From the NCBI GenBank assembly GCA_016748015.1, contig JAAOMT010000226.1:354604-418603 (forward strand): DNA of 64,000 nucleotides. The letters are read 5' to 3'. The notes beneath the pieces were generated by a model. The model searched no databases. It worked only from the letters and a program-made list of their open reading frames with translations, and had not been told where the DNA came from. Shown here in pieces: positions 11,413 through 61,970 of this stretch (position 1 is its first letter; every line of letters starts with the position of its first letter). Origin of the DNA: Geosiphon pyriformis uo1 (Eukaryota; Fungi; Glomeromycota). The position numbers and the translations under genes are program-made.

Positions 11413-11457
<45 letters not shown>

Positions 11458-11881
11458 TAATATGAAGTCCATCATCACCATTTCTATTGATACCTATTGA
11501 TAAATGATGATCGTTCGTCTCGGTTGGCGAAGAAGGTGGCCAAACCCTTGTAGCGAATAAATCAGCAGGAGGTTCTCCTGATTCCTTAAGAATATGTTTT
11601 AAAAGTATGACTTCGGTTTGAGTGAAACTTCTGTTGACGCTATAACTAGACCTATAGCCTGGTGTAGGGTCAGGATATTTTGGTTTTCTTCCTCTACGTT
11701 TTTGACGTTCTCCATCTTCAGCATTCGCGTTCAACGTATTCGAAGACATGTCCAAGAGGTCACCAGTTGGTCCAAGTTCTGTATTTATTTCTCTTGGAGA
11801 GGAACTCTGAGAAGAGTTTGTGGTATTCGAAGACGAGTTCGTCGAGCTCGTTATTTGATGTTCGGTATCAATCAAAGACAT
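10067..11881 (-). CDS. Homeobox transcription factor (604 aa, Q50 homeodomain, AT-hook-like motif, N/H/Q/S low-complexity tracts)
   Basis: Intact ORF. Homeodomain RRKRSRNVTSPYQSRVLRKVLAVTSFPSTEMREALANALNMHPRTVQIWFQNQRQKAKN at ~11064-11243. KRRGRKPK near the N-terminus and LDMLAAAAL near the C-terminus. Confidence 0.93.
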
Positions 11882-21494: not shown

Positions 21495-22925
21495 ATGAAG
21501 CATCTCAATCATCTAATTAAATCATTTATCCAAAGTCGATGGCACAAAATACTTTGGCTCTCTTTTTTCCTTTTTTCCTCTAGATTTTTTTTGTTTTTTT
21601 GGAAAAATAATTTTTTGGAAATCGATTTAAATAAATATGCCTTCCCTTTTTCGAAGATTTCTTGGCATGAAAATGTTTTCACTGTTCGTTTAAGTAAAAA
21701 TCTCCATGAAAAATTTCCGAAAAAGTCTTTCATTTCAGAAGAAATTCCAATTCTAAAACGTTCACTATCGCCTGACGAAGATCCAAAAAAGAGACTTATT
21801 TCAATTAATGACACTGACCAGTTGATTCAAAAATTTGCAATATTTGCCAAATATGCTCAACAATCTTACTGTCTTAATGATACTTCAGGAAATTTAGGCT
21901 GGTTTGATGAGCCGCTTTATGGTATTTTAATTACTAGAGTTGCAAGAAGAAAATTAAAATATTAACCATGATTTAACATAAAAACATTCTCAAGCCCACG
22001 CATTTGCTTCAACGAAAACTAAAGAAGTTATCGTGATGTTAAGAGCAAAAGAAATGGATTTTTACAATTGGAGGAGTAGACGAGCTGGATGGGGCCTCTT
22101 TGGTTTAAACCAATTAATCGACCATACATTTGATGGTGTGTTTCAGACTGCGGTGAAGAAGATATTAATTATGATTAGAAATTTGTTTGAAATATACATC
22201 GATATTAGAAAGGTTAGAGTTGTTGGACATGGAGTTGGTGGGGGTAGTTAAAATATTTCGACTTTTTAATTCATTCTTTTTCGAGTTCCTGAGTTTTCAA
22301 TCCTGATTTTCATAATCACCTTTATTAGTTTACGCAGTTCTTACGGCACTAACATTACGCAAGAAGCACCTGAATCTTGATGTTCAAGTTTACACATTCG
22401 GTCAACCACGTTTCACAAATCCAGTACTGGCAATTTATATTAACAACGCCTTACCAGGGAGAATTTTTCGAATAACACATACTGATGATTATGTACCCCA
22501 ATTCTCACGAAAAGACTCAAGTCAAGTTCTGTTACACATGTATTGGCATCATGAGCGGGAATTTTGGATTTCTTATAATTGTGATTGTTCTAATGTTAAC
22601 GAAAATATGGATAAACCTATTGGCATGGAATCAGATGAAGATTTATCTTCAATGTATCAGGTTTATGAATGTGTGGGAAAAATTGTGACCGGCTCTGATT
22701 TGGTCGGGGTCATTGATGAAAATCCAGTAAGTTAAAACTTTTGGCGGTTGTTATACACAGGCTTCTAATTTTAACATTTATTGAAATCTAAGAAACATGT
22801 CGTCTAAATAAATTCTTTTCTAGGAATGTAATTCAGGAAACCAAGCAGGCCAGCAATTCATTAAAACTTCCTCCCATTTTGGTCCTTATTTTGGCAGATT
22901 TATGGGTAAATGTCCAAACGTCTGA
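21495..22925 (+). CDS. Class-3 (fungal) lipase-like protein with the catalytic Ser replaced by Gly; 4 exons
   Basis: Exons 21495-21921, 21995-22243, 22329-22726 and 22824-22925 (all GT-AG, frame-consistent). Motifs: hydrophobic N-terminal segment, FAKYAQQSYC, VVGHGVGGVYAVL, YTFGQPRF, RITHTDDYVPQ, YWHHEREFWI, HFGPYFG..MGKCP. Confidence 0.9.
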
Positions 22926-23227
22926 AGTTAATTTAATTCAAGAATAAGTTCTGTGGTTTTTTTCTCTTATAAATTAATCTCTTTGGAATTGCCTTTTGTT
23001 TTGATTGGGTTAAATGATACAATTAAACTAGAATTCCATTTTAATGATGAGCCAAATTTGACTCAAAGAATCAAATCTAAATTTATAATAAAAGTTAACA
23101 TAAATCTTTAGATAAATTTAGTTTAAATTGTGAAATCCGACCACGCTCTAAATATATTTATTTTTAAAAATTTGTCGCAAGTTTTTTTGCGATTCTTATC
23201 TTGTAATAGAATAATTAATCCAATAAT

Positions 23228-24595
23228 TTAAACTGAACAAAGACCCATCTGGTAGCCAAAGTATGGTCCATAATGTGAAGAAATACCTTGAAATCCGTAC
23301 TCCACTTCACTATTATTACATACCTAAATAATATTTCAAAGATTGATTTTTACAAAAATAAAGAAATGGCTTCAAAAAAAATGAATACAATACTTACCGA
23401 GCTCTCATCCAGAAATTTATAATGGGAGCTCATCTTACCAGGGCATTCATAAATAAGATATTCAGAAAACTGTGATCCTACTGGTGTATCGCATTCACAA
23501 TTATGCGAAGTAATCCAGTACTCTGTCTCGTGATGCATATAACCTGCGGTTTTTAATGGCACCTGTGGCACGTAGTCATAGGTATTTGTTATACGATACA
23601 ACTTTGGAATCTCACTTTCGACATGTCTCGCGAATTCCAAGTTTCCAATTCTTGGTTGACCATAGGTATATATTTCAATCTTCAATCTTCGGCGTTCCAG
23701 TTGTAAAATTAGGCCTGTAAGGACCGCGTATACTAGGGTGGATTGATTGAATGAATAACTGTTTTTATTTAGGTAACGGTTTTATCACGAATTTGAGGAT
23801 AAAGCTGTTAAAAACTCACCACCACCTACACCGTGCCCAGTTAAATGAAGAGAAGATCTCGGTCTTGAATCCAACAGTCGTCTTATCCTTTTGAGAATTT
23901 TTTTTTTTGCAATTTTAAAAGCATCCATGAATTCTGATTTTATCATTGCTCCAGGAACTTCTAGATATGGCTTTTGATGATGAATAATGTATCGCCATTG
24001 ATCGAATTCTCTTTCTTTGCCTCGAAAATATGCAATAACTTGATTTTTTTTTTTGCCTCGAAAGGAATAGGCTAGAGTTAAAGAAGCATATATTCTAAAT
24101 AGATGATTTTTATTTGATGTGCAAGCTTTTTGACATGAAAACTCGTAATAAAAAGTGTATACCATATACAGGGTTCTCCGAATGCCCTAGATTTTTAGAA
24201 AGACAATAAGCTTTTTTAGCGATAAACGCAAAATTCTTGAATCGTGTAAGTAGTTCAGGATTAGTGATTAGTCTTTTTGGGTTCTCTTGATCCCTGATCA
24301 TCCAAAATCGATTTCGTTTATGGCTTTTGATAATGGAAATATTTTTTTTTAACGATAAATCTAAAGAAATGTTCATAAAACTTTGTATCTTGGATCTTTG
24401 AATAACCGACAAAAAGCTATTATTTTCTAAGACTAGATAATTTTTTTCAGACATATTCTGGCTATTAAGTTGTATTGTGAAGATGGGAATTTTCGAAAAC
24501 AAAAGCAAAAATACAAGGAATAATGTCGTCACAGTTATGATGTTTGGCCTTAAAAAATTATTAAAAAGTAACTTTGATAAAGAGGAAGAAATCAT
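23228..24595 (-). CDS. Class-3 lipase-like paralogue with the catalytic Ser replaced by Gly; 4 exons
   Basis: Exons 24595-24163, 24071-23820, 23732-23398 and 23323-23228. Motifs: N-terminal TM/signal-like stretch, FIAKKAYC, LTGHGVGGVYAVL, YTYGQPRIGN, RITNTYDYVPQ, YMHHETEYWI, HYGPYFG.QMGLC. Intron positions and phases match the + strand copy. Confidence 0.9.
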
Positions 24596-26591: not shown

Positions 26592-27623
26592 ATGAGTTTT
26601 AACGAAAAAAGTGATCAAGGTAGCCCTACAACTGAAGAACCTCACCTCATTAAAGGAAATCCTCAAGCCCAACAACCTTTTTATATTCTAACAAACTCTC
26701 AACCACAGCAAATTCAAGGAAATCCTCAAGCCCAACAACCTTTTTATATTCTAACAAACTCTCAACCACAGCAAATTCAAGGAAACTTTCAACCACAGCA
26801 AACTCAAGAAAACTTTCAATCACAGCAAACTCAAGAAAACTTTCAATCACAGCAAACTCAAGAAAACTTCCAACCACAGCAGACTCAAGGAAACTCTCAA
26901 CCACAGCAAACTCAAGGAAACTCTCAACCACAGCAAATTCAAGGAAACTTTCAATCACAGCAAACTCAAGGAAACTTCCAACCACAGCAGACTCAAGGAA
27001 ACTCTCAACCACAGCAAACTCAAGGAAACTCTCAACCACAGCAAATTCAAGGAAACTTTCAATCACAGCAAACTCAAGGAAACTTCCAACCACAGCAGAC
27101 TCAAGGAAACTCTCAACCACAGCAAACTCAAGGAAACTCTCAACCACAGCAAATTCAAGGAAACTTTCAATCACAGCAAACTCAAGGAAACTTCCAACCA
27201 CAGCAGACTCAAGGAAACTCTCAACCACAGCAAACTCAAGGAAACTCTCAACCACAGCAAATTCAAGGAAACTTTCAATCACAGCAAACTCAAGGAAACT
27301 TCCAACCACAGCAAATTCAAGAAAACTCTCAACCACAGCAAACTCAAGGTCAACACCTAAAGGAAAAATGGGAATTTGCTACTGCAGTGATAAAATTTTT
27401 CACGTAAGAATTTATGAAAAATATTTCAGTTTGTTAATAGAAAGAAAAAACACATTTTTTATCTTTTAAACCTTTAAATTTTTGATTCAAAAGTCAATGT
27501 TGCTCTTGCCTGGAAAATAATGAAAAATTCCAAGCAAAGAAGGAAGAGTTAGATTCAAAAATAAAAGAAGCATCTAATAAATATCAGGAAACTACACAAA
27601 TGAATATTCTCCCCACCCAATAA
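26592..27623 (+). CDS. Glutamine-rich tandem-repeat protein of unknown function
   Basis: ORF 26592-27407 has a good ATG context (AAAATG). A probable intron at 27404-27493 (GTAAGA...AAG) extends it with QCCSCLENNEKFQAKKEELDSKIKEASNKYQETTQMNILPTQ*. The second exon is less certain. Confidence 0.6.
26778..27344 (+). repeat. Coding tandem repeat: 21 x 27 bp (Q[GE]N[FS]Q[PS]QQ[TI]) with a 108-bp higher-order unit, preceded by a 60-bp duplication
   Basis: Units counted from the translation. The synonymous variant CAG-ACT recurs every 108 bp (e.g. 26880, 26988). Confidence 0.95.
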
Positions 27624-29311
27624 CTTTTCATCCTTTCAGATTTTATAAATTTATTAAGGACAAAAGAATTATTGCTTAAAGATCGCAGCTTTATCCCCAT
27701 TATATCGAGGCACATTTTAATTTTCACCTTTAAATACAGCACAGGAATTTCTCTTTCACAATGAGCAAATTTTACAGAAAATCAGTGAAATGGATCTAAC
27801 AAGGAACTGACCGATGAGGATTCAAAGTAAAAAACTTTGATAAAGATGGAATACAGAAAGTTCACTTAAAATAGTATAAATCTAATTGAATATATATATA
27901 TCACATATAAATGTTACATAATTATCAAGTTTTTTAATACCCACCCTGAAACTTTTGTTTATAGAAAAATCAATTTGTATTGATGTCTTGCATCCTAAAT
28001 ATTTAAACCATTATAAAAACTCATTTTTCAAGAAATTATTAATTAATACGATCAACGGAATGGGTCACTCCTTGTGCTGCGCATTTTCAATTTCTTTGCC
28101 ATTCAAACTATTTCCGGCTCACAATATACCCAAATATTTGGAATTTTAATAATTATGACCCTAACTGTTGCGAAAAGCCACGTTTTTTAAATACTCTTTA
28201 TCGATTGGTTACATTATCAGAACGGATAAACCATTAATATATTAAAATTTGTTGCTTTGAAAAACTCAATTTAAATCTTTTTGACCAATTTTAAAAATAT
28301 ACGAGCAATTTTTTAAACAACAAACGAAATTTAAAATATAATTTGATTAAGAAAAAAGCTATATCTAATATAGAATTAAGACAATATAATTGTTTTGTTC
28401 AGGGGAGAAAAAATTAAAATGAAAATAAAAGACTATCGTGATTAATTATTAATTCGGTTTCAATTAATTTGGAATAATATATATATATATATATATATGT
28501 ATAATTTTAATTATTCCTCAGTTTATCCCCAATTCAATCACAAATTATTTCAAAAGCACTCTTTAAATACTGAATTTCAAACCCTAGAGCACCAACCGAA
28601 GCCATAATTAAGATAAACTTTAAAGGTTTATTGTTTTTTAAAATCTCCGGGTTTCTTTGCATTATATGCATTGATTTTAATTTCTTCGACATATACCCGT
28701 TCATTATTGAGAGTGGTATTTGTTTTCTCGATGATGACAACCCAAGCCTCATTGTAAAAGCGTTATTCGATGTGAAAGTTGACAATTTTGAATGATGTTC
28801 TACAAGTTCAAAGATAATTAGTATCTGTTATAGAATAAAGAAGCAAATAGAATATAATATGAACCCTTAAAATCCCCTAAATGTGACTAAAGCTTTTTAT
28901 TAAAGCTGGGGATTTATAATTATTTTAGATCAAAATAAACGAAACTCAATCAGGAAATCAAAGGCGCGGAAGCTCCAGAGCAAATAGATCTCGTAAAGCG
29001 CTTCAGTTCCTAGTTAACTGTTCAAAATTTCAAGCTGTGACCTTTTTTTAATCGCTTCTATAAAAGATTGATTGTGAGGTATACATTTTATCCTTAAACA
29101 AAATCAAATAGGTTTTATAATGAGAAGAAAAGGTACAAAGAGGTTGAAATGACGCACATTTTTGCTGCAGATAAACTTTGATCTGTAAGAGGACAGTCAG
29201 TTGGTTTGATGAGATAAAGGCAATTCGACGATCATAAATTTATCTATTTGTGACACCTGAATCTGTGATCATCAAACTTTTAGGCATCTTTGGAGTAAAA
29301 AATTTAATTAC

Positions 29312-30743
29312 ATGTCGCAATCCCATAGAAAACAAGTGTTGTTATCGTATAAAGGTGAGATTTAATATTCAAATATGTTTTTGTAATTTATGTTTGGAGA
29401 AATGAAAATTCAGGTTCAGCAACAAGAAATTTAAATCATCAAGGTTTTTTGGGAAGCTTTATATTTTGATTCTTTTTTCTAACACACACACACACATCAT
29501 CTTATGTTTCTTTGGTGAAAAATATAGCAAATGTGGACATTTTTTGCGAATTTTGTAAGAAGAATATTTCTATATATTTATTCGATTTTAGAATATCTTC
29601 AATCCTACACAAAATAGCAGTTGAGATTTTATTAGTGATTAATATTTTTAGTAGAGGTTGCAATCCATTTCATCCTCTATGTCCGTGGCGTTTATCCAGC
29701 GAGTAAGTTTATCCACCTCACATCAGAGTACTTGCATACCAAAAATTGATTGATTCAACTATTTCTCCTAATACAGATTTATTCGTGTTACGCAAGAAGT
29801 ATGATGTGCCCGTTCACATGAGTAGGCATCCACATTTAACCAAGTATATTCTTGAACTGGTACTATCATGTAAGGCTGAACTCGAGGAGGTACTAATCGT
29901 CTCATTAAAAGTGACTGGTAACAAAATATAAATTAACACAACCCGACTCGATAAATTCTCACTTTCGCAGGGTACACTTGAGAAAGCAGCGCTGATTATT
30001 GTTAATCCGAATGAAGGAAACAAACCTATAGAAAGATGGGTGTTTGAAGTGGACAAGCTTGTCATGTTTCCAGATAATCTTGCTGACGCAAGGTACTTTT
30101 GTTTAGATATCACTATGCTTTTCCAATTATAGCACAATTAAAAAGATTATATTAATAGGGTTGAAGGCGCAATATCTTTATTTGACCTTGAACAGCATCT
30201 GCGTGGATTTTTTAGGAAAATTAGTGTATCTGATGCTATTTTAACGCCAAATCCAGAAGGTTTGGTTATACATGACTTTGAGCTTCATTTTTCAAGAAGA
30301 ATTTGGTCTTAAAAATTTCCTTCATACAGGATGCACCTTCAAATTTGTGATGGCGCTCAAAGATGGATCAAAGCCTGCATCTTTGGAGGTAAAAACAAAA
30401 AAAAATTATTTGTACACCCTTCATTAAAAAAAATTAATCAAAATGCACAAAAATTTGCGCATCCTTTTTTTAGAATGATTGCCCATGGGTTCCAGCTGAG
30501 CCATCAGAAAAATATCGAGCAATCCACCATCCAAAAATTGTTCCTATCAAATCGGTAGATACTGGATTGTTCAAGGTTTAAAAAATTGTGTTTTAAGATT
30601 CCTTGATTTGGAACTTTGACTACTTTACTAAAAAAAAATTACAAATTCGATAGTTACAATTATTCGTCCAACAGAATCAGGAAAAAGTCGAACCATCAAA
30701 GGATAGCTCAAATATACGCCAAAAACAACCGTTACGTGATTGA
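29312..30743 (+). CDS. REV7: HORMA-domain protein, DNA polymerase zeta subunit Rev7 / MAD2L2; 9 exons
   Basis: Exons 29312-29354, 29528-29554, 29652-29702, 29777-29889, 29971-30092, 30159-30259, 30330-30388, 30474-30575 and 30654-30743 splice in frame to [65 protein letters not shown]...PIERWVFEV...LEQHLRGFFRKISVSD...PEGCTF...PWVPAE...IVPIKSVDTGLFKLQLFVQ. These are Rev7-diagnostic blocks. The first exon is inferred. Confidence 0.92.
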
Positions 30744-32473
30744 TACGAAAATTGTTTGATATATTGTGTAGCTAACAATTAACGATTATGTTTTGGCGTA
30801 ATTTTTACAAAGGCACTTTTAATGGTGTAACTAAAAAAAGTGATCAGCAGACTTATAATCTATTAGTTTGCAACCACGTTTTCCCAAAGTTCACGGCAAT
30901 GAGTTTTGATTGATGTTATAGACAAAGCGTTTAAAACTTGATTCTGAGCGTTTACACCTTTAAGTTTTCACATAACATGCACTGCTACATTTTTACTGAT
31001 TGAGCTAAACCTTACATAGAGAAACCTCCAGTTGAGGGAGTCCTGAGCGCAAGATCTTGGAAAAAAATCCCGTTTCCCTATTTTTTGAAGCTCTTTGTAA
31101 CTTGGAATAGAAGTTTCAGATCTTCACTGCTGGTGATGTCATACTTATTTGTGATCGGCAAATTTTCAAATGTAAAACAGAAAGTAAATTTTGCAAATAG
31201 TCCAAAGTCATTTTTTTTCCCCATGTTTTTTTGCTTTGAAAAAAATCTATTATGTTACTTAAAAAGTTCGAACATCAAAATAAAAGCATGAATTCACCCT
31301 CTAGCTCTTATTATGTCTACATAAGTTCCTTATAGGTGATGTTTAAAAAATTGCGCCCAAAATTCCTTATTATTAAAATTTGCTGCTTGTAAATAAGTCT
31401 CACTGTTAATTTATTTTATCCCAGTTTGAATTTGATATAATTATAAAAAGACATTTAGTAAAATTATGAAATAATATAATGATTTCATTTAACTGTAAAT
31501 TTTTTAATATATACCTCTAATGTTCAGAGCCGTTTTTATTATGATGGATAAATAATTCTAAAAAATCAAATAAATGTTAAAGTTATTTGGAAACAGAAAA
31601 CGAGTAATAGTGTTTTTTGAAAAAGAGATAAAATTTTAAAGTTAGATCCATTATTGAGATATTGCCAAAAAAACCTTTTATATAAATATATTAATATATA
31701 TCTTGTATACTATCATCATGTAAAATATGAATACTCGCAACCCTATTTCCTGTGTGAACGAAATTTTAAAATTTTCCCTCTTGAATTTTTCTGAATTAGG
31801 GCTCATTTGAAAAATGTAAAAATCCTTCTTATTTCTTAAAAAAAGTATTAAAGGTTTTTTATTCTTGGGGTAGAGTTTCCTAACTCAGATTTTAGTAGAC
31901 TTTGAATTTTATAAATTATGGATAGGGATTCCTGAAAGTCGTGTAAAATCAAAAATAATTGATTTTGAAATAAAATTTTGAGAATAAGAAATTTTGTTAT
32001 CTATTTTCAGCACTTATTTTTGGGTATTGAAGCTTCGAAATATTGTAAGTTGGATATCTAAGAGCTTTAATATTTCATTTCAATATCCAAGAAATTTTCT
32101 ATACTTCTAGAACAAAAGTATATTCCCCAAGAAAAAATTTTATGATTGGCAGAACGATGATATTTTTTAGTATTTTATTTACTAATTCAAATTATTTACT
32201 TAAAATTGGACCAAGATTTACATTACAGTAAAACAAATTAAAATATAAAGTATTAAATTATCTAAAAATATGTTAATAGAACGATTAAATTGGGAAATAA
32301 TAAAAGCAAAAATATTCGATTAATTTTAACGTGACTATGTAAACAGTTTAAACTTGACTTTCACTAATTTTTAATAAAGTTCCTATTCGGCTCTTCCACC
32401 GATATGATTCTCCACAGATTTCAGTTTTAGTCAGAGTATTACTCGTCAACTGAATCATCAACCCCTGAAGAGT

Positions 32474-32605
32474 TCACATAATCGAGCATTGACCGGTACC
32501 ACTACCATCGTCTGGATCACCGGTTGGTCCTTTAATAGACCCGTTTCCAGGAGCGATAATTGAGAGAGGATTGAAGGAGGATTGAGAGTTTGTTGTTGGT
32601 TGCAT
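32474..32605 (-). CDS. 43-aa CAAX-terminated peptide, candidate lipopeptide pheromone precursor (copy A)
   Basis: MQPTTNSQSSFNPLSIIAPGNGSIKGPTGDPDDGSGTGQCSIM*. GC-richer than its flanks, AAAATG start context, one synonymous difference (GAT/GAC) from copy B. Confidence 0.75.
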   Translation of the reverse strand: MQPTTNSQSSFNPLSIIAPGNGSIKGPTGDPDDGSGTGQCSIM

Positions 32606-32650
32606 TTTTCTTCAAGTTATTTGATTTAATTTGAATATGATGGTTTTTTC

Positions 32651-32669
32651 CTGTCTCTTATACACATCT
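32651..32669 (+). other. Tn5 mosaic end / Nextera adapter (assembly artefact)
   Basis: Exact 19-mer CTGTCTCTTATACACATCT. Confidence 0.95.
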
Positions 32670-34504
32670 TCAATTGAATGGTTAAAGGATAATTATTTGC
32701 GTTATTATGCATAGTCGATAAAAATGTAAATTTTTATTCATCAATTCCTTACTAAGCACGATACTTTTTCTTGGAAATTTTCTAGATTAAAAAAAGATAT
32801 GCTAAAATTGCCATTTTTAGAAATCACTTGATTTAGTATAAATTTTTACTTGTGATTTTTCTCATTTTTCTAGCTATTATAGATCAATAAAGTTATATTT
32901 TTCTGATATTGAGTCGAAATGGAAAGAATTTGAATATTTCATCTAATAGAATTTTATAATTAGAAAAGTCTTCATTTCACTTAGTCAAGTGTGATCTCAA
33001 CAATTCTGGATCTGAATCTTACTAAATAAATCTTTGAGCTTTAATTTATGGAGTGGTACATTTAAATGAATTGTCTTTTGTCGCGAAACCTAGAGATAGT
33101 AACTGTCCCAGTTTGGGTGGTCACGTCACTAGCAAGTTTAACATTTTATTTAGGAATAATTTTATTATGAAAATTTATGAAGCTAAACCCTAAAGTAAAA
33201 TTCAATGTCTTGGCAGTAAGAAACGTTTAAATAACCAAAAAAAATTGTAATTTTTTGATATGAAGTAACGATTAACTCAAATTGACTTTAATGACTTCAG
33301 TTCATTGAAAATTTTATTAAAATATCCCTTTTTTTAATTTTATTCGATCTCAAGAATAAAAAATTAGAACAATTCAGCTCTCAAATAGTTTGAAATTATT
33401 CATTTAATTTTTTTTGCTAAAAAACTAGGTCTTAATTATGAATTCAATTAAACGAATGAAAAATTATTTATACAATTTTCAATCAAGAATAGAAAAAAAT
33501 GTAGTTGAAATTTCTCAAAAATAAAAACTTATACATGAAATGAAACAAGATTCGATTTATGAAAGTTGATTGTTTAGTGTAAAACCTGTGCTCTTTAAAA
33601 GATTCATTGAGAACAATCATTGAGTGATTGTTACTATTTTGCATTTTGAGAGAACTATTTCATATTTCTCTCTCGGCATTTCTTGAAATAAAATTTTACG
33701 ACCTCAATTCTTTCAAGTATTATTGAAAAGAACAATGTTAAATCCGACTATACAATCTCGAACTCAGAATGTAATAATTTAAAAACGGATAATAAGCCAC
33801 TATCAAATTTTAAAATACATGAATAGGTTTCCAGTCAGAAACATTAAATAACAAGGTAATTGTATCATCATGCAGTTGGTGAACTTGGTATTATTTATTC
33901 TATTGAAATATACTAAAACTTATGTTTGAATTTTCTTAGCTGCCCTTTTGGTTTTTGGAATAACATTTTCAATGTTTAAATTTTCTAAAAGAAAAGCAGT
34001 TGAATTATTACTCAAGTTAATCTCTCCTTGAAAATAATATTAAATCTAAAAATTTGTGGCTCTTCAAAGTAAGAAATATGAAATTTTTGTAGCACAGGGA
34101 CCAGATGATGCAACTAATACAAGATAGTTAGTACAATATTTTGGAGCTAGAAAGGTTGGAAAAAGGAATTTTATTAACATCAAAATTCAAGATAAGATTT
34201 AAAGATATCTAATTGTCTTCTCGCTGTGTTTGATATTATGGATGGGAACTTGGAATTATTATTGTTCTGAGTCGTCTAGCAAGGAATTGATTAATAAAAA
34301 TTTACATTTTTATCGACTATGCATAATAACGCAAATAATTATCCTTTAACCATTCAATTGAGTTTTTAAACTTGAAGAATAAAGTTTGATATTTATTTTA
34401 CTATAAAAATTCTTAATTAGCTGCAAAATATATTGCTTTGGCTTAGGACTTTAAAGTTATAAAGAAATTTGTGATAATCAACATTTTAAAGTAACGCTAA
34501 CTAG

Positions 34505-34822
34505 CATTGTTTATAGAATACAGGTATTTTTGGTCATATTGTTTAGAGAAACCTGTTTATTCGATTATAAATTCAATCACTTGCATTTAATAAACTGTAA
34601 TAACTGTGATCTATCACCTTATATGGTTGAATAACCACATTGTTATAAAGATATTTAGGACATTGTTAGCATAGCTTAACAATGTGCGATTATACTAATG
34701 TGACTAGCCTGAACAATAGATTTTAAAATTAAAATTTTATCATTCTTATTTATTAATATTGTTTTAAATGATAAATGGTGAGAAAAGTTAAAATTAAATT
34801 TATGGTTTTTTTTTCTATAAAA
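34505..34822 (+). promoter_or_regulatory. Putative promoter of CAAX peptide copy B: six AACAAT/ATTGTT motifs plus TATAAAA
   Basis: Motifs at ~34505, 34538, 34638, 34661, 34678 and 34712. TTCTATAAAAC at ~34813-34823, about 120 bp upstream of the ATG. Confidence 0.5.
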
Positions 34823-34938
34823 CGAGATGTACCTTTCCGATATTTTCTTTAATCCAAGTAAATTGATTAAAAAAAGGAGAAAGTAAAATCACAAATACAA
34901 CTCTTAACTTTGAAACTAAATCAAATAAATTAAAGAAA

Positions 34939-35070
34939 ATGCAACCAACAACAAACTCTCAATCCTCCTTCAATCCTCTCTCAATTATCGCTCCTGGAAA
35001 CGGGTCTATTAAAGGACCAACCGGTGACCCAGACGATGGTAGTGGTACCGGTCAATGCTCGATTATGTGA
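34939..35070 (+). CDS. 43-aa CAAX-terminated peptide, candidate lipopeptide pheromone precursor (copy B)
   Basis: MQPTTNSQSSFNPLSIIAPGNGSIKGPTGDPDDGSGTGQCSIM*, protein identical to copy A. Confidence 0.78.
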   Translation: MQPTTNSQSSFNPLSIIAPGNGSIKGPTGDPDDGSGTGQCSIM

Positions 35071-37076
35071 ACTCTTCAGGGGTTGATGATTCAGTTGACG
35101 AGTAATACTCTGACTAAAACTGAAATCTGTGGAGAATCATATCGGTGGAAGAGCCGAATAGGAACTTTATTAAAAATTAGTGAAAGTCAAGTTTAAACTG
35201 TTTACATAGTCACGTTAAAATTAATCGAATATTTTTGCTTTTATTATTTTCCAATTTAATCGTTCTATTAACATATTTTTAGATAATTTAATACTTTATA
35301 TTTTAATTTGTTTCTTATAATGCAATTTTTTTGTGCTCACAGGCCATTGGAACTAAAATTTTATACCTAAAATAAAATGGATTACTTAACTGATTTTTCA
35401 TCTGTAAGTTTTTGTGCTTAAATATACACAAAAAACGGCATCATTTATTCTGATTTTGAGTTTCAGCTTAAAATAATAAAAAGATAATTGGAAAAACCTG
35501 ATTGCAAACACTAATAATTGACCAGATATCTATATTTGGGATTATTTACTTTATTACTATAATTATTTTAAAAAATAAATTTTTAATGCGAAGAACTGAG
35601 TTATAATTATAATAATATTTAAGACACTTTTTTATCTAATAGCCAAGTAAAAATCTCAATATACTTTCAAGTACTTTGGTGAAAGATAAAAAATAATCTT
35701 ATGAAATTTCAAGTTGCGACTAATTTCTCTAAGTTGGATACCAAACACCGAAATGTTGGTTATATGCATATATGAGACTAATTGTACTTTGAAAGACAAT
35801 TGATTGGTTTTTAGATCAAACTATTAACGAAGGAATTTCCAATTTCTGAAACCTTTTTGTCTTGGGAGACTAATAATGAAAATCATGTTTTAGCCTCAAT
35901 TTTATGAATGAGCCAAGTGAACACCAATTATGATTTAACTTAAATTATACCATAAAATGAATGTTTCACTTTTTGAACTTTTTTAATTTTTTTTAGGCTA
36001 AAATGTTTATCGCAACAAAAAATTTATACCCCTTTGAATAATTCAAAATTTTCACAAATTTCTAACTTTGTCAAATTTTGCAAGATACTAAATTCCTCAT
36101 CCTATGCGGTCTAAATTAAGAAAATTTTATTTGATTATTTTATTTAAAATGTTTAAATTTAACTACACTTATAATTCTAAATTCCCATTCCCAAACAACA
36201 ATCATGCAATATTAGAGACAGTTCATTATCCAAAGAATCCAAAAATTTATATTGGTCAATTATAAATTAAAAAATAAATTGATTTATTATATAAATTCTA
36301 AAATTTATATATCTGAACCGGGAAGTTTTCTCAATGCTGGAAAATTTGACTAACATTGTCAAGGACAATGATTAAATATTCGTTTGGGGGTTTGTTGGCG
36401 ATCGCATTTTTTAAGTTGAATATTGTCTTTTTTTGATATAAACAAATGGTGATAATATATAAAATTCTAATTTTCAACGATTCAAAGGTTTAAATATTCA
36501 TCTTATGATCAGAAATGGTGATTCTAAAGAACAATAGTTAGTTCGACTAACTCTATCTGCTAATAAATGTATGACAATATTGAATGACCCAAAAACAAGC
36601 TTTTAATTGCTATCATTCTCTTTTCTTTGAAATATTATTTATAAATATTCAAGTTTAATTGATTCTTTTCTATTGAACATGTATTTTTTAAGAATAAAGC
36701 GAGTCATTTTAGCTTGAAAAAAGATTGTTTAGAATGTTAAAAAAAAATTTCATTTAGATAATATCACAATAAAGTTTTTAAAAAAAATAGAATTTTGTTG
36801 GTTCCACTCATTGTTTATTAATGAATTCGATAACTATTTCCTATTGTTTGAATTAAAATGTATTCTCTAAACCAAATTTGATTAATATTATTTATTTCTT
36901 GTAAATACTTAATAAAAATTTTTCTATAAAAACCCCTTTTTTACACCGAAAAATTGAATTCTACATTCAAACCTTAGCTCAATCAAAAATCCTATTTTAA
37001 TTGATACTAAATCAATTTCTTGAGAGCCCATTTAAATCATCTTTAAATTACTCAAAATTATTTAAATAAAATAAAA

Positions 37077-37238
37077 ATGAGCCAAACCTCGAATTCAACC
37101 ACTAAAACCTTCAATAAATTAAGTCAAAACGGAACTTCAAAAAATCCTTCAATCTTTTCTGATTGTCAAATTTCTCACAGTGGAACGTATGGAAGCCAAT
37201 GCTCAATATTCAATGAAGGTGTTTTACCATGGTTTTAA
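37077..37238 (+). CDS. Diverged paralogue of the CAAX peptide (53 aa, CAAX masked by an 8-aa extension; possible pseudogene)
   Basis: MSQTSNSTTKTFNKLSQNGTSKNPSIFSDCQISHSGTYGSQCSIFNEGVLPWF*. Shares T.NS...FN.LS..NG..K.P...D...SGT.G.QCSI with copies A/B. Upstream TTCTATAAAAAC at ~36922. Confidence 0.6.
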   Translation: MSQTSNSTTKTFNKLSQNGTSKNPSIFSDCQISHSGTYGSQCSIFNEGVLPWF

Positions 37239-39399
37239 AGTATAAAGGCCAAATATTTAGGGGATTTTTTACCAGAATCCAAGTATTTTTTTTTTGAAAT
37301 AGATTTTTTAATGACTAAATATAATTGGTTAAAAGCTTTTGAATAAATCGACCTTTTGACATCTTGCGATCTCTTGTAATTAGGCAAATATTTCAAGAAT
37401 TTTCAAATTATAATTAAATCACATAACTGTTTAATTAGTTCCTCTTTTTGACAAATATCAAATATTTATCCAAAGCAAAATCTAAGTGAGAATATTCTCA
37501 ATACCCATTGTAATTATAATGATCATCTTGTCGATTAAAAAAAGTCTAAAAAAATCTTTTAGGTGTTTAGTTGCATAAATAACTTTTTATTTAATTTAAA
37601 AAATAGAAATATAGGTTTAATTGGTTTGATAAATTTATATAGTAACTATACCAGACGTCTAAATTTTATTATAAAACTAAAAAATTTAAAATTTTTTGAA
37701 CAAAGTCCCAATGTCATGTTGAATCCAATAGGTTTTTGAAATTAATACTTTAAATATCTCTGAGAAACACTAAATACCATTAAGCATTAAAACTATATAT
37801 ATGGAGAGAAATAACTTCGCTAAGGTAAATAATTTTTTAAGCATAATTTTGCGAATAGGAATTAGTATTTTCTTCAGTCAGTTCTCTTCAATCATACTCT
37901 TCAATTATATATGAATGAAGCAAGCCTTTCAATTTTTATTTATATCCATTTCTCACCATTATTACAAAATTGATTGATTTTTGCTTTGGAAAATGAAAAA
38001 CCTTTTTTTATTTTTTGCATCAATTGAATTGCAGATATCAAACCTCTAAACAATATTATGCTTTTAGCATTGTCACTGGAAAACAGGTATTCATACGATT
38101 ATCACACGTTTTTATGAATTCATGCCACTCCCATTTTAGCAGATCATATGATTATGACTCTATTATTACCGCATATAATTTACTTGCTCTCAAGATTTTT
38201 TATATATGCCTATACAAATTATAATACACCTAGTATAAACTGAATAATGAATTTAACATCTCATTTAGAAAATAATGAAATGATACTTTTCGATTTAATT
38301 TCAAAAACCGTCAAAATCAATTCAAAAGTTGTTACTAGTAAATTTTAATGAAAACGTTTTTCTTGAAATAAGTTGAATTCTAAAGCGAGATAATAATTAC
38401 AAAATATATATCTTTAATTAAAGTATCATGAGGTTTCTACCACCAACAGGACTTAATTTTAAAAAAAAATTGTGTATCAACTTTTAAATCTACTAAAATT
38501 TTTAAACTTTAATATCTTGCTAGATTTCTGATGGATTCAATATCATTGTGATTGAAGCAAATACATTAAATTCTATAGCCCATTGAATTTTTTGAGAACA
38601 CAATCACTTAATTTAATTTAAAAAATTCTCATCAATTATTGATTATTGATTATTAATTATTGATTAAAAACTAAAATAAAAACAAAAATTCACTTTATAA
38701 ATTTATTATATAAATTTTATTTATTCAAATCCCAAGTTAATAATTAACTTGAAATCAAAATATCATGTTTTAAATATATTCAATAATTTGTTTTTTTCAA
38801 TAATAACAAAAAATTATATCACAATAAACAAACAAATAAAATGTTGATTCAAGAAACCGAATTAGAATTTAAGAAAATAAAAATTATTTATTTTATTTTA
38901 TTTTTGAACAACGCTAATTGAAGTCTTAACAATTACAAAAGCTTGAAAATGAACCTCTTGTAATGATACAGTAATTAAAATTTTCTAATTTATTTATAGT
39001 AATTTGAGTAAATTAAAAGATTTGTATTCAATGATAAAGTTTTTTTTTAAAAAAAAAAAGTATTCGAAACATTTATAATATTGACAAATATCGTTTAAAT
39101 TTAAGTATTATTTATTTGATTTCCATAAATTGGTCATTAGTCAACTCTAAAGTTAATAATTTCATTGTAGTTTAGAAAAAAATATTTTATTTTAATTGTT
39201 AAAAAAAATCATTTTTTATAACTTCTACGTGAATATTAGTGTTAAAAGTTTTATTGATTTTCTGTTTAACTATTATTCTTATAGTGAATCTTTTAAATTT
39301 TATTCAATAATACTCGATATTCAATCTTTTACAAATTTAAATCTATGTGTAATCTTAATATTACATTTGATTACACTTGTAAATTATCAAAAACAAATC

Positions 39400-42300
39400 A
39401 AACTTCTTTCTCTCGTACATTCAAAATTCCGCAAAGAACAACATTTTGAAAAAAAAGTTTTTTGTTTTTTCTCTTGTTATATCCTTCACAATTTTTCAAA
39501 ACACAAACCTCTTTGTGGTGGACCTGATGGCTGTTTCTAGCAGTAATATGACAAAAAAAAAGACAGCAAAGAGATCTGTACATGGTTCTTTTAATGATAC
39601 CTTTTCTCAAAGGCAAAAAATTTCTGTTGGCAATGTTAAACACTCAGGTGATAAAAAGGATATCTCTAAGCAGGCCTTTGATAGATGTTGATAGATTTTT
39701 AAACAGGGAAACTGACTCAGATAGGGAGGCAAGCAACACTCTGTTGGCTGGTGCTAGTTACAAAGTAAATAATAAAAGTTACACTTACCTTTACTTTAAA
39801 AAAAATACTCCTAAAATGAAAAGATTCAATACTGGTAAAGTGGTCACCTTCTCTCTTGGCTCTTGCGATTATTCTTTTAAAATTTGAAGAGATTATTAGA
39901 TCGACTTTTATCTTAAAGAAAAACATGAACCAAGCAGCAATATTGGCTGATGAAAAAAGTATTCAAATAAACAACAATCTTAAAAAACAGGAAATTCATT
40001 TAGATTAGACTGTGATAATTAAAAAAATTTCTATAAATATGTTTAAAAAACAATTATTTTTGCTTTGTTTAAGTTTAATTAAGTGGTGTTAAATTAATTA
40101 CAACCTATTAAGCTATGACAAAAAACTGTAATAAAATTTGCTAAATTAGACCAGACTAATTTATTAATATTTAAGTACTATTTTAATTGAAAAAAATTCT
40201 GTGTATATAATCAAGACCAATAGAAACTAAACAACATAGTTATTTAAAGATTGATTTAAGACATTGTTGTTTAAAAAAACTAATAAGAAAACTTGTATTA
40301 TTAATTGCATATTTGTTATTAATATTAGAATTAAATATGTACTGTTTGTTTTAAATTTAAAAAAATCTAAAGCAGACTTATTATACTATTTTGTTTTTGG
40401 TAATGTAAATTATTCTTAAACTTGTTTGGATTTAGTTCATTGTAAAAAGTGTAAAAATTATAATTACTCTGCCATAAAGTATAATTTTTCTGTAAACTTT
40501 GTCCTTTCTTCTAAAAAAATTTATAAATGTATACTTTTAGATAATAATTGTTTTTGTTTAATCTACTTTTATGCTAAGAAGAATGTTTTTATTATGCGTT
40601 TAATAGCTTTTAGTAGTAAATTTTGGGTCTAAATAGTGTTGTTTAATTGGGTTTTTAATGATAGTTTTGTGAGTTTTTTATCTTTTGCTGAAGTTTTTCT
40701 TGTTAATGTTTTAACTTTAGCGGTTTTATAACTAAAAAGATTAGAAAAAAGTTTATAACTTTTTTTTGATCAAGTTTTTATTGTTTTTGGTAAATTAAAT
40801 GACTTGTTTTCTTCTGTTTTCTTTCTTTAAATAACTGTTATCTTTTTGTTGCCACCAACTGTTTTTAATATAATATTAAATAATTTTTTTAAGAAAATTG
40901 TAAATATGCTATCTGTAGTTTCTGGTATTTTTGTATTTGTTATCAAGCAATTGAATAATTTTAAAACAAATATTTGTGAGCTTTTTAGCTCTGTTAATAC
41001 TATTTTGTTAAGACTCAGTATAATATTTTCTAATAGTAATATGTATATTATTATTTTTTATGAACAGTTTAGTTTAGAAATTGTCACATGTAATATAAAA
41101 AAATAAACAATTTTACAAAGCAAAAAGACATTATTAAGTAGTATACAAATATGAATAATTTAATTTTTATTGTAACTACAATAAAATTAAAGAATTAAAT
41201 TAAGTTTTGAATTAAAAATAAGTTTAATAATGTGTGAGTTTTTATTTTTGGCTCAAATTTTTTTTATTTAAATTCTAAAATAATAATTATTATAAACAAT
41301 AATTTAACTTGTCATGTTTTTAAAATTTTTAAAATAAAAGATTATTTATTGTTAATAAAGCTTTTGTTCAAAAATAAGCTTTTTGTATTAATAATAAAAC
41401 TATACAGTACCCCTGAAAAGTAATGGTGGAGTAACTCTTGCGGCGCGTAATTCTTATTATGATCCAATCAGCTATTGTTAAGACATTTTAAGTAATAATT
41501 TGTACACGTATATATTCCATGCTACTATTTTTATTTTTTAAAACAAAATTGTTTTGACCAATAACGCATTTTATTTCTTATAATGAAATATAATCCTGTA
41601 AAATTCAATCGTGAAGTCATTAAGAGATTTTGGCAACAAGGTTATCGAAGTCCAACCGAAATATCTCGAAAAACAAATATTCCTCTTCTCTCTTGTGAAT
41701 GATATATAGGACAACTTCGTAAAAATGGTCAAATTCGAGCAATTCATTGTTCAGGTCGTCCACAAAAAACTTTACCAAAAATGTGTCACCAGATTGGAAA
41801 AATCGTAAATCGAAATTACTTTACCTCAGCAATTGAAATCAAGGCACAACTTGCAAAAACATATTCTGATTGATATAAGTGAACAGACTATTCACGATGA
41901 ACTTTTTAGGCTTGGTTATACAGCTGTTTTACCAAGACGTGTACCTCTACTCACCGAACAAGCCAAACAAAACCAATTAGTATGGGCTTAAGAACATTCT
42001 AATATAATTGGCACAAAGTAGTATTTGCAGATGAAACAACTTTACAAATGTTTTGAAATACTTGTTTGGCTTGTTCTCATTCGGGTAAACCTATTGCACC
42101 AATGGTAAAACATCCATTTAAACTTCATATGTGAGGAGCAATTTGTGCATATGGAAAAGTTGAAATATGCATCTTTACAGAAAATATGGACCGATATCTT
42201 TATCGTAAAATTCCAGCATGATAATGATCCAAAGCATACTTCAAAAGATGTTCACGCAGATATTGAGATGCAACTGCCAAATCACGTTTTGTCTTGGCCA

Positions 42301-45300
42301 TCATATAGTTCAGATCTCAATCTAATTGAGAATATTTGGCTATTCTTAAACAAAACGTTGAGAAAAAAGTCAAAGCAATAATAGCACACAAAAAAATATC
42401 TCTCAAGCGATTTTTATTACAATAGTAGAAGAAGAATCGAATAATCTGTCTAATGAGGCCATTCTTAACTGTATTACTAGTATGCAAAATCGAATTCAAG
42501 ATTGTATTAATGTAAAAGGAGGATATACTAAATATTAATTTTTTGAATATATATTCTTTACTTATATATCTATTAAATATTAAAATTTAAACAGAAATTA
42601 TCATGTATAAAAAAAATACCCTGTCATTACTTTTTGAAAGGACTGTATATATGTGTAATTTTGAAAAAAAATTTAGTTCAAACTCACAATATAAATTCTT
42701 TAATTGTTAAAACAATAAATAAGTATTTTTTTTATCTTAAATACTAACTTTAATAAAAATAATACAAAGAAAAGTATTAATTTAATATGTGCTTAAATTT
42801 TAAATTTGTTAACTTTTTAATAAGCAATTTTGTTACTAAAAGCAATAACATAAAAAAATTTAAAAAGTATTGAAAAATTAATTAATTATATTTTGGTATT
42901 GGTTTTTTTTGTTATTGTTTTATCTAGTTATGCTGTTTTAAATATGACTGATTTTTTTAATATTAATCACAAAGCCGTTTTGGTTTTAGTAGAATTAAAT
43001 AAACTTTTCAATATAAAATTTTTTGTTTTATAAAAATAAGTAAACAAAAAAGAGTAAAAATACAATATTAAAAATACAAATAATAAAAAGTGATTTTGCT
43101 TAAGAATATTTTATTATTAAAAGCAATTAGTTTGTTTGGTTTTTTTTGTGATTTTAATTAAGTCAAAAACTTGGAATTAATATGACTATTATTAAATAAT
43201 ATTATATATAAATTAACAAATATAGTTTTCAAAAAAGTATAATCTTGTAATTTTAATAATATTAGGATCAAAGAATTATTTAGATCATTTAAATTGAAAA
43301 TTTTGACACCTAAAATTATTAAAATAGTATTATTAGATGTTTTAATTATTTTCTAAATTACTGTTAATGTTATTTTGTTGTTAATTTTGTTGTTAATAAA
43401 AGTTAATAAATTTCAATAAATTAATTAATTTCTAAAGTATTTCTCTATACTTTAGATTATTATTGCTGTTAAATTTATAATAAAATGACAAATTTTATGT
43501 TAATTATTTGTAAAATTATTTTGGAGTACAGAAAATCAGAAAGTCTTTTTAAAGTTAAAAAAAATCAAATCAAATTATTTTTGATGTATAAATTTTTTCT
43601 ATTTTTGTTTAAGAAGTTTTTGTGTAATAATTTAATTATTTTTATTGTTTTTACTATTTTTTAAAATCATATAAAAAATAAAATTTAATATAAATCAAAA
43701 AAAAATTAATATTTAATCTTAAAGATTGTTTAATAATAATTATTAATTTTAAGTTTTAAGAAATATCTTCTGAATTAATTAAGAGAAATTGTGTACTAAT
43801 TTGTGAAATTAAAAATTAAAAATTGGTTCTTGAATAATAATGTTTTGGTCTGTTATTATGTGTAACTTTTTTTAAAATCTTATTATTAAGTTTTAATTTA
43901 TATAATTTATTTTTTAGAATTTTATATATATAAAATAATTCATTTTATTTATGATCAAATTTTTTATTCTATTGTTTTTTAGTCCTAGTTTTGTATAAAA
44001 AAAAATTATTTTTAACTTTAAATTTATTAATAGTAAATAACAATTTGTTGTTATATTATTTTTTTGTTAAGCTTAAAAATATTTAATATAAGTAATTACA
44101 ATTTTTTTTTTTTAAAGTGCTAAAAAGAATATAAACTCTTTATTAAAGTTTTTTCTGTAGTTGGTTAAATTAAATAAGTTTTTAATAAGAAGTTAATTGA
44201 TAATATTGCTGTTTTTCTATAAATTAAATCAAATAATATGTGTTTTATTGTATTTTGTTTAAGTATTTTATCTGTTAATAATATTTATAGAATAAAGATA
44301 TCTTATTTCTGTTTAAAATTAATTAAAATTTTGGTTAATAATTTACAAAGTGTTTTATTTAAAAATAATATAGTAAAAATAAAAGTATTTTAACATTAAA
44401 TTATTTACAAATTTTTTGTATTAAGTTGTTTATAAAATATGTTTTTTGGTTAAATAAAAATTTAATTGTATATTTGTGTTTATAAATAATGTTTTTGTAA
44501 ATAAAATTTGTTATTAATTTTGTATCAGTTTTTTAAATAGTTTTTATTTTAAACTATTTTATAAGATAATCTATAATAATTACAACATATTAATTTTTTA
44601 ATTGTAATAATAGTGATCTAATTAAATTAATATCAATTTTGTCAAAAGTTGTCTAATTTTAATTGAATTTAAATATTCAATAAGATAAAATTTTTTTTTT
44701 AATAATTTTTATAAAATTTAATATATTATTAAATATTTTTTTATATATAATACCAAAAATAATATTCTAATGTTTTTTGAATTGTGTTGTCTTTTTTAAA
44801 ATGTGCTAAAGATAAGTTTAAATATATATTGTAAAAATTGGTTTTTTTTATGTTTTAAAACTAATTTAAATAAATTGTTTAAATTTTTGTAATTTTAATA
44901 ATAAATATTATTATTATGTAAAAAATATTGTATTAATTAATATTAATAAACAATGTTTTTTACTTAAAGTCAAGTTTTTTAATATTGTAAATGTCTCTAA
45001 ATAAATTTTAATTTTGTTATAATTTTTAAAATTTATTGTATATTGTTAATTTGTTAATTTATTAAATTGGTTAGTATTTTGATATTAATTTTATTTTATT
45101 TTTAAAAGATTATTAATGTTTGTGTATTATATTATAATTATAATTAGCTAAAAAATCAGTCTATTAAAATTGTTTTTTATTAAACTTGGAATTTTTTTTG
45201 TTAAGCCATTTAAATTTAATATTGTTAATAATAATATTAAATTGTTTGTCTTTTTTAAAATATTGTCGAAAATATTAAAAAGCCCAAATAACTTTTATTG

Positions 45301-55289: not shown

Positions 55290-58200
55290 TTTATTATTAT
55301 TATTTTACGAGTGAGGTCCAAACATTATCTAGTGCTATACATTAAAGAAATGATTTATACTAAGCATGAATCATATATTTACTACACATGACCAGCCACT
55401 TAAGCTGATCAAAACATCACTATACAGTTATATGAACAGAAACAAAGTCATTTATACCCAAAAAAAATAAGCATGATTCACAAAAACCAAAATAAACACC
55501 CAACACCTCAGCAATGCCAAGCAATTTGACCACACCAGCAGAAAACCCTGAAGCCAAACCTGAAACTGTTATAAGAACCAAATCATCCAGTGGAATTAGA
55601 TTGGTTTTCTCTATATAGGCTTGATATTTAATTCAGACCAACCAGATATTATCTCTAAAAACGAGACCAAGAGATTTCACAAACTTAACAACCTCCAAAC
55701 CAGCCACCTTTGGATTATGAAAGACGGAGACAGCTTCGCAAAACCAATTATTAAACACAAAATCCTTATAAAGAGCCATAGAGACTGAAAAATCAGAAAC
55801 ACAAGATAATAACAACTGCAACACATAAGAAAAAAAATGAGATAAACCAGAAAGAGTTTTCCAAGAATTGACATGAGAGTCCAATATATAGGATTGAGTA
55901 GAATTGTCAATTTTACAAAAGAACACGTGATCTGAAGTCTCCATCTCACCACAATATAAACAAAGCACACCAAGATAATGGCTGTTGTAGAGGCGCTTCT
56001 GAACTGCAACAGGAAGCCAATGATGCAAAGCTTTCATAAAATAAGTATGGATGCCAGCTGAAAGTTTGCTAGTAAAACTGGTGGCCATATGCAAATCAGG
56101 ATGCCAAACCAGCAAAAAGCAGGGCCAATCTACCTTAGAAAGCAAGCTATTAGCCAAGAACTTAGAGCCAGAACCAACTTCCCAATGTGTGTGACAAATG
56201 GAGTGATAAATATCATGAACAAAATGTCTGGAATTTCCAGAAACTACACTATTATCAACAACTATAAAATAATCATTCAAGCAAGGAATAAGACACTGAC
56301 CAGAAAGAGAAGCAGCATCAACAATTAAGTCAGCATGCTCATTTCCAGAAACGCCAGAGTAACCTTTCACTTTGTGCCAACTGACACTTAAGTTCTTACA
56401 TCTAACAACATTTGCAATATGTCAGTACTCTACCCAGCACTGATTGTGAAAATCTGGACACACAAGACTCAATTCAGACTTGTATGCATCCAGAGCAGAT
56501 TGACTATCTGAGAACAACTGAACAGAACTAGATGCGGAAACACACTCCAAGGCCAATACAATAGCCTGTAATTCTGCCAGAGTAGATGACATCAAACCTG
56601 AAACACTAATACCAAGGCCCAAACCAATGTTCTCAAAAAAAGCAGCAGCATCAGCCCTATAGCCTGTTGTGCTCAAATTCTTTAAAGATCTATCTGTGTA
56701 TACAGATATGTCACTCAATCTAACACGAGAAAAACAGTCATGAATAGAAACAAAATCATCAGAATTAAAGATGTTCAAAGAAACAGCACCATCTGAAGCT
56801 AAAGAACCAGCAGAGGGAGAATTCACACTATTGAAAAAAGCCGTAGTGAGCTTGAACCACTCAGGAATAGGGCCATGAGGGTTGAGCCTTTTCCATTGCT
56901 TGAAGGTGTACCAATCAAATATGGCACCACAATGATTACAAAGTTGATCCACGAAAGCAACATCGAACCTCCAGAGAGAAGGGAGAGACCTGAAAAACAT
57001 CAACTTGCCCAGAACAGAAGACATAAGAATGCTACCGCAGGACCAAAAAGAGTTGGCCAAAAAGCCACCTAAAGACAAATTGCAATCAAGAAAAATACAG
57101 ACCATGTCTGCCAAAAAGTTATTAGAAGCACTGACATGAATACAAACAGGAGAACTCAATGGATGAACAGGATACCAACACCAGACTTGTAAATCATGAA
57201 ACCTATGCACAAACAGGTGATTTAAAATCCCACCAGAATTCACAAAACTGACAAGAGAGACAACCTTGCATTCAAACTGAACTTGCAAAAAAAATTTCAA
57301 ATCATAAAAAGAAGAGTGATGAAGTGTATCACTAGAAAAATTGAGGGAGAGACCAGACTTAAGCTTCAAGTTCTTATGAATCAGAGCATTCCATTTGCTA
57401 CAAACACTGACTGAAACAAAACTAAATTGTGTATAATAACTGACTATGAGTTGGAGAACTGCTGACACCAAGTATAAAAATTGTTTATTAAAAACAGCCT
57501 TTTTTAGAACGAAATTGACAAAAAATCAAATGTCCAAATGTGCTTTAGCTAAACTAGGTCTTGAAAGACCCTCAGTTAAAAAAAAATACCCAGATACTGA
57601 TAAAACCCCCCCTTTTTGGCAATAGAGATGGGTGAACTACTGATAGAAAGGAAAGGACTACTGACCTAACTATTGATCAGAATGGCCACTGTTTTGTCAT
57701 TATTAATTAAAATATCATTAATCCAAAAAAATTTATTGGCAACATTAAGAATATGTTGAGTAGCAGTCTGATTGCTACCAACCCAAATTGTGTCATCAAC
57801 AAAAGCACCAGCAGCAAAAAAAGAAGAGAGCCCAGCCTGAGATTCAGGACAACCACTTTTGAAGACAAAATAAGAGTTTAACCTGTATTTACATATACTT
57901 TTCTGTCTTTTGACCTCACAGAACAGAGGATCATAAAATATGCACCACAGAAGTGGAGAGAAAACTTCCCCCTGATCCAAACCATCATGAACACAATAAC
58001 CATCAGTCAAACCAAAATCTGTCATAACTTGGTTGGTACAATCTCTGTAAATACTACCAAAAAATTGAATGAATTTGCTACACATCTTAATCCTAATTAA
58101 ACTTTTCTTGAGATGCTCCCAGCCAACTGAATTATAAGCCTTTTACATGTCCTGCAAAACCAGCCAGAGTTCCTGGTTCTTCTCCAAGGCATCTTCAACT

Positions 58201-61200: not shown

Positions 61201-61970
61201 CCATGATTATTTGCCAACTTCCCAGCAGCCATCATTGCCTTTTCTGAAGTAAAAGTCACACGAATAATTTCACCAAATTTTGAGGAAGTAGAAACCCCCC
61301 CAAAACTATTTACACTTGAAAAAATTTTCCTGATAAAACTCAATTTTTCTTGAGAAGACTTTCCAGTGATGGTCACAAGATTAATATCTAAAGCAAAGAA
61401 TTTGTGAACAGACATTTGAATGGATGGTTTGATAGGTAAAGGGGGCGGAAGAAGAAAAGAATCATCTAACATGTCATCGTCTGTATTGACAGTATCATAA
61501 TCAATCACACCCAGAGGCTTCTCTAATACCTTTTTGGTCTTTACACACAAACCTTTTGGCATTTAATTAGAATCTCCTTCCGCAAAAGCACCACTCTCAC
61601 CATAGTCAACACTGGTTTCTTCAACCAAACACTCCTCTTCCATGTCAATACTCTTAGACTCAGTAATGTCACCTGTCTCAGAACCCCATAAACGAGCACC
61701 AGAAGTTTCAGCAGCAACCCTTCTATTATCAATACCCTCTGCCAATACATCTTTCTTCCTCTTTTTCCTCAATGCAACTGTCTTGAAACCACTCTCAGAA
61801 CCAGAAACTTTAATAGTCTTCTTCATAACAGCAATAACAAGACCAACAGTGGCCTTATAATCAAAGAATGGTTTTGATTTATCATACTGAATGGTAAAAA
61901 ACTTCTTTCGAAAAAACTTTTGACTCTTTTTTGAGAATTTTGGATGAAAGAAAGAAAGAAGTTTTTTTTT
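55290..61970 (-). mobile_element. Near full-length LINE (ORF1 with CCHC knuckle; ORF2 = APE + RT + RNase H + C-terminal Zn finger), inactivated
   Basis: ORF1 starts MKKTIKVSGSESGF (61826) and has CSVCNSLSHSSLVC. ORF2 motifs: KIVTYNVCGMNN and GGDFN (APE); QDM*KAYNSVGW, GLDQGEVFSPLLW and AFVDDT (RT); VYTDRSL, AELQAI, FSDSQSAL and KGYSGVSGNEHAD (RNase H); CLYCGEMETSDHVFFC. (TAA)n tail at ~55290-55305. Multiple stops and frameshifts. Confidence 0.95.

Follow-up and report, generated by a model that had tools for sequence, protein, structure and literature searches.

Dispersed CaaX-peptide genes of Geosiphon pyriformis as candidate precursors of a lipopeptide pheromone

Do fungi of the Glomeromycotina possess genes for peptide pheromones? 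To our knowledge, no one has yet observed sex in arbuscular mycorrhizal (AM) fungi or their relatives. An earlier survey regarded Ste3 as specific to the Dikarya [PMC3251606]; STE3 and STE6 are present in the AM fungi Rhizophagus and Glomus, in which no peptide pheromone gene was found [Halary 2013, PMC3834313]. The question is raised anew by two very short open reading frames (ORFs) in a 64,000-nt stretch of DNA (hereafter the window; contig JAAOMT010000226.1, positions 354,604 to 418,603), which a preliminary description had assigned to an early-diverging fungal lineage, in agreement with its source, Geosiphon pyriformis uo1 (Glomeromycotina); the close protein matches are likewise all gene models of this species (assembly GCA_016748015.1). 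The two ORFs are real genes of a real family, and we regard them as strong pheromone-precursor candidates. With a probability of about 0.68, their product would be a secreted farnesylated lipopeptide that is read by a Ste3-type receptor, in the manner of a-factor and the basidiomycete pheromones.

Copy A (32474–32605, minus strand) and copy B (34939–35070, plus strand, 94.5 bits against the family profile) are divergently oriented and encode the same 43-residue peptide, which ends in CSIM directly before the stop codon; their DNA differs by a single synonymous change at codon 30. This arrangement, already noted in the preliminary description, is borne out by the positions of the ORFs and by two-copy read depth, and for copy A also by a unitig break at the codon-30 variant. 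The genes consist of a single exon, lack a signal peptide, have a Ser/Thr-rich N-terminus and are present in multiple copies. The CaaX precursor format that had been proposed on these grounds holds, and gains from selection, from orthologues in Ambispora, from an invariant Asn and from a conserved promoter, as described below. What had been taken for a pheromone gene cluster of three is instead a pair from a dispersed family of at least 25 members. Counted over the window and nine fetched loci of Geosiphon, 25 copies are intact, with 23 different coding sequences among them, and one is frameshifted; all 25 intact ones end in CSIM-stop. Copies were counted from the loci, summed contig depth being invalid as a measure of copy number, and the family size is a lower bound, with at least 25 copies dispersed over at least eight contigs. 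Within the family the window pair is a variant of its own, with Ser7, a TGA stop and a distinct 3' flank. Across the Geosiphon copies, the mean proportion of synonymous differences (pS) is 0.40 and that of nonsynonymous differences (pN) 0.021, with a dN/dS of 0.036, and the variable columns number 8, 10 and 32 at codon positions 1, 2 and 3. The genes of the Geosiphon family are thus protein-coding and subject to purifying selection; their CaaX-stop and their promoter are conserved. A frameshifted CaaX gene copy (L012:12874–13000) still carries the promoter element, and a divergent Geosiphon copy (L007:10001–10132), without the exact paired element, has a C-terminal part nearer the Ambispora type and possibly represents a second peptide type.

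In an exhaustive profile search, the only relatives came from the two species Ambispora leptoticha and A. gerdemannii, besides two animal matches, coral and sponge repeat proteins (P0012, P0018), which were dismissed as chance matches driven by repeats. The six orthologues from the two Ambispora species have 39–43 codons and end in CVIM, CIIW or CVIV followed by the stop. Cys-a-Ile-X-stop is kept in all six. Residues M1, N6, Q8, S9, F11, N12, I17, N21, G26, P27, T28, D30, Q39, C40 and I42 are invariant across the two genera; the stretch from D30 to Q39 varies by species, while the N-terminal region and the GPT core persist. The two copies in A. gerdemannii (L006:8307–8435 and L009:10001–10129) have different predicted mature peptides, and judged by their sequences these may represent distinct specificities. 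Metagenome contigs gave 83 pattern matches, of which none was confirmed.

The gene pair sits within an inverted repeat, the assembled form of which is faulty. Its right arm (34277–35313, plus strand; 1037 nt) comprises promoter, ORF and 3' flank and is covered by read contigs at about twice the single-copy depth (201 over 34293–34481, 162 over 34538–35003 and 186 over 35029–35313, against 78–98 for the spacer and both flanks). These contigs derive from run X1, possibly the assembly's own source, and test the assembly step, not an independent sample. The left arm as assembled (32231–32754, minus strand) matches right-arm positions 34277–34361 and 34910–35313 at 98% and is without the intervening 548 nt of promoter (34362–34909). 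In their place stand 15 other bases and a Nextera/Tn5 adapter of 19 nt (32651–32669, plus strand; exact match, 0.00 expected by chance), an assembly artefact; the adapter was not found in nine other loci checked. The arms are separated by a single-copy spacer of 1522 nt (32755–34276), and the read contig that covers it (32709–34322, depth 97.6) shows no differences and extends into the repeat at either end. Because of the two-copy depth, the overlap of the spacer contig with the repeat on either side and the coincidence of the unitig break with the codon-30 variant site, the true locus is likely an inverted duplication of approximately 1037 nt with a full promoter on both genes and a spacer of 1522 nt. 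The assembled promoter of copy A is misassembled and unfit for use. That the pair is purely an assembly artefact is ruled out by the two-copy depth and the contig layout. Further adapter junctions that corrupt inverted repeats may be present in the assembly.

The promoter of copy B contains a TATA box (34816–34821, plus strand), a feature that all Geosiphon copies whose upstream region is intact share at −103 to −123. Approximately 270 nt upstream of copy B is a putative paired inverted element (34661–34683), composed of CATTGT, an 11-nt spacer and AACAAT, which is presumably of the HMG-box type. The pair (CATTGT or TATTGT, 10–12 nt, AACAAT) occurs within 450 nt upstream of 17 of the 25 Geosiphon copies, a count that is not made over independent units, the copies being related by descent. 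Elsewhere in the window it occurs once, at 14211, with 0.1 expected. In Ustilago, Cryptococcus and S. pombe, HMG factors (Prf1, Mat2 and Ste11) take part in the response to pheromone [PMC7490403]. Contigs of a second run of the same sample, X2, lie on the ORF and 3' flank only, apart from two chance pieces of 18–24 nt, and none lies on the promoter, the spacer or the third ORF. Run X2, whose library type is unrecorded, is probably RNA, since contigs from DNA sequenced to this depth would be expected on the two-copy promoter as well. One X2 contig is specific to this locus (32279–32486, mirrored at 35058–35265; no differences, depth 13.9). At its mirror position, it contains the end of the ORF and the 3' flank of copy B (35071–35265, plus strand), which is likely a 3' untranslated region.

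How would such a peptide function? CaaX precursors of the pheromone type are farnesylated, lose their last three residues through Rce1 or Ste24, are methylated by Ste14, trimmed N-terminally and exported through Ste6. The family shares the general features of a-factor-type genes, namely an ORF of less than 100 codons ending in CaaX-stop, multiple copies, conservation in related species and selection at the protein level. A published filter for yeast a-factors asks for multiple copies and for an Asn 5–20 residues before the Cys, with an uncharged residue directly after this Asn [bioRxiv 10.1101/2021.09.28.462209]. Asn21-Gly22, at 19 residues from Cys40, conforms to this rule, which was derived from yeasts, and we therefore predict a mature peptide of 19 residues, Gly22 to Cys40 (35002–35058, plus strand, in copy B), released by cleavage after the invariant Asn21. 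We hypothesize that the window ORFs arose by a recent inverted duplication in a large family with dispersed members, that HMG-box factors drive its transcription and that the high copy number raises its output. The cytosolic precursor would be farnesylated at Cys40, trimmed by Rce1/Ste24 and then methylated by Ste14. Subsequently, an Axl1/Ste23-like protease would cut after Asn21, and the peptide would leave the cell through an ABC transporter of the Ste6 type, to be sensed by a receptor of the Ste3 type. That the CaaX family supplies the genuine ligand of Ste3 in the Archaeosporales, a lipopeptide mating pheromone outside the Dikarya, is a tentative proposal that falls just short of an even chance. 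A role in mating proper is somewhat more doubtful; the alternative is other hypha-to-hypha or self signalling.

Three other explanations of the locus were weighed against this proposal. Public gene models of Geosiphon and Ambispora join the ORF to downstream exons, in which case it would be the first exon of larger genes. However, the splice points differ between models and the joined proteins are unrelated (lipase, kelch, transposase-like). The mis-splicing probably arises since Met-TAA reads as a GTAA splice donor, yet the window copies and five of the six Ambispora copies have the stop as TGA. The stop alternates between TAA and TGA while the 3' flanks diverge, and its survival in either form argues for termination and against splicing; in addition, the X2 contigs continue beyond the stop codon and cover part of the 3' flank, with no joint listed there. 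The first-exon explanation therefore has only the slimmest chance, and the gene has been overlooked so far because public annotation splices its stop away. A slight chance is left for the ORFs being fragments of a repeat or transposon, or the pair a product of misassembly, as might be suspected of a multicopy sequence in a genome rich in transposable elements and with an adapter inside the left arm. Against this stand the codon-position bias and the low dN/dS given above, the confinement of conservation to promoter and ORF and the lack of a transposase or terminal repeats in the unit. The read contigs speak against it as well, for their depth is that of two copies along the entire arm, and the contig of the single-copy spacer reaches into the repeat on either side.

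More serious, though still unlikely, is the explanation that the product is a prenylated microprotein kept in the cell or on membranes, where it would act structurally, as a decoy or as a regulator, or else a signal that is not read by Ste3, in either case one that needs high dosage. A CaaX terminus alone is not specific to a-factor [PMC10569646], and other results also weigh against a pheromone. Within Geosiphon there is hardly any variation over the full 43 residues, so that the whole precursor and not the C-terminal part alone is conserved. The peptide has no match in Pfam, PDB (both at E up to 10) or the ESM Atlas, the profile search found no homologue beyond Geosiphon and Ambispora, and the published STE3 and STE6 come from Rhizophagus and Glomus, where no homologue of the peptide was found. 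Its predicted mature form is long, acidic and Gly-rich in comparison with the hydrophobic a-factor of yeast, and in Ambispora single sites occur without the exact pairing known from the Geosiphon promoters. However, missing homology in Pfam and PDB is a weak criterion, because known pheromones often escape homology searches. Between species it is the residues just before the Cys that vary, while the N-terminal region and GPT core persist, as in a species-specific ligand; the position of the Asn and the multicopy state fit the pheromone filter, and the promoter carries HMG-type sites. Hence, we favour the pheromone precursor over the microprotein.

The third ORF (37077–37238, plus strand) is single-copy, has 53 codons and had been described as a diverged CaaX paralogue. 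This does not stand, since eight residues separate its CSIF from the stop and it has no terminal CaaX. A read contig over 35284–37500 matches the assembly without differences or gaps, so the ending is real, and a sequencing error concealing a CaaX terminus is ruled out. Its kinship to the family is borderline. In pairwise comparison it scores 45 (BLOSUM62; shuffle p = 0.0006) and is the top non-family frame of 4078, with the frame of an unrelated homeodomain protein next at 43, and against the family profile that includes Ambispora it reaches 2.9 bits (shuffle p about 0.05). In a gapped alignment it retains M1, N6, F11, N12, N21 and Q-C-S-I, and a TATA-like site is present. The GPT.D core is absent, the DNA profiles of the promoter and of promoter plus coding region do not match it, a homologue search with it gave no candidates, and Pfam, PDB and the ESM Atlas contain no match. 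From its sequence it is possibly a decayed paralogue, or else a chance similarity. The failure of this ORF, the adapter-caused misassembly, the true inverted duplication and the paired form of the promoter element are new here.

The proposed linkage of the peptide genes to REV7 did not recur: a multi-exon REV7/MAD2B gene lies at 29640–30740 (plus strand), one exon of which matches human MAD2B structures (E 5e-5, exon-by-exon search), and there is no REV7 match at the nine other loci. About 20 kb from the pair, an intronless gene (10067–11881, minus strand) with a long, conserved-looking upstream region encodes a homeodomain protein of 604 residues (PF00046, E 7e-15), for which evidence of a mating-type homeodomain identity was not found. 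Two convergent class 3 lipase genes (21495–22930, plus strand; 23230–24595, minus strand) have counterparts near family copies in loci L008, L010 and L012, which may merely reflect a large lipase family. Further features are a 271-codon ORF of 10-residue Gln-rich tandem repeats without a Pfam match (26592–27407, plus strand), a broken Tc1/mariner transposase (41580–42540, plus strand), with related pieces a short distance downstream of family copies in loci L003 and L009, and a degenerate, GC-richer retroelement of the non-long-terminal-repeat type with a reverse transcriptase fragment (55600–61600, minus strand). An Rfam search over 28000–42000 gave no match.

How does the family compare with known systems? 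With the Saccharomyces a-factor genes MFA1 and MFA2 and related yeast pheromones it has in common a short single-exon precursor without a signal peptide, a Ser/Thr-rich N-terminus, a CaaX-stop, multiple copies and an Asn 5–20 residues before the Cys. In contrast, there is no detectable homology to a-factor and Geosiphon lies outside the Dikarya; its predicted mature peptide has 19 residues, compared with 12 in a-factor, and its genome has at least 25 copies instead of two. The a-factor precursor, too, starts with MQP and has an IKG-x3-DP spacing. The lipopeptide pheromones of basidiomycetes (Ustilago mfa, Cryptococcus MF and mushroom phb) are likewise made from CaaX precursors, and are sensed by Ste3-type receptors under HMG-box control (Prf1, Mat2), whereas the Geosiphon peptide has no visible ER/DR-type processing motif and no Pfam match. 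Unlike the genes of basidiomycete pheromone/receptor (P/R) loci, the Geosiphon copies are dispersed, and no STE3-family gene is among the called genes of the 12 fetched loci. Putative a-factors of Leotiomycetes and Sordariomycetes have a Ser/Thr-rich N-terminus, a length of 45–64 residues and CSIM among their endings; their role in mating has been doubted, and their expression is not mating-type specific [PMC10569646]. The Geosiphon peptide shares CSIM and the Ser/Thr-rich N-terminus with those of Leotiomycetes, but is without their GY motif before the Cys and belongs to a different subkingdom. A description of the CaaX family was not found in the literature searched, subscription papers being outside its scope. 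The candidate is relevant to the age of peptide pheromones in fungi: if the proposal is true, the a-factor/Ste6/Ste3 system would predate the split of Dikarya and Mucoromycota, and there would be a chemical handle with which to trigger, in Glomeromycotina, a sexual or fusion response that has never been observed. A further comparison is with the orphan STE3/STE6 pathway of AM fungi of the same subphylum, for which the CaaX family offers just the kind of ligand to be expected from such a receptor and exporter, and a candidate short enough to be synthesized makes the question of the missing ligand directly testable.

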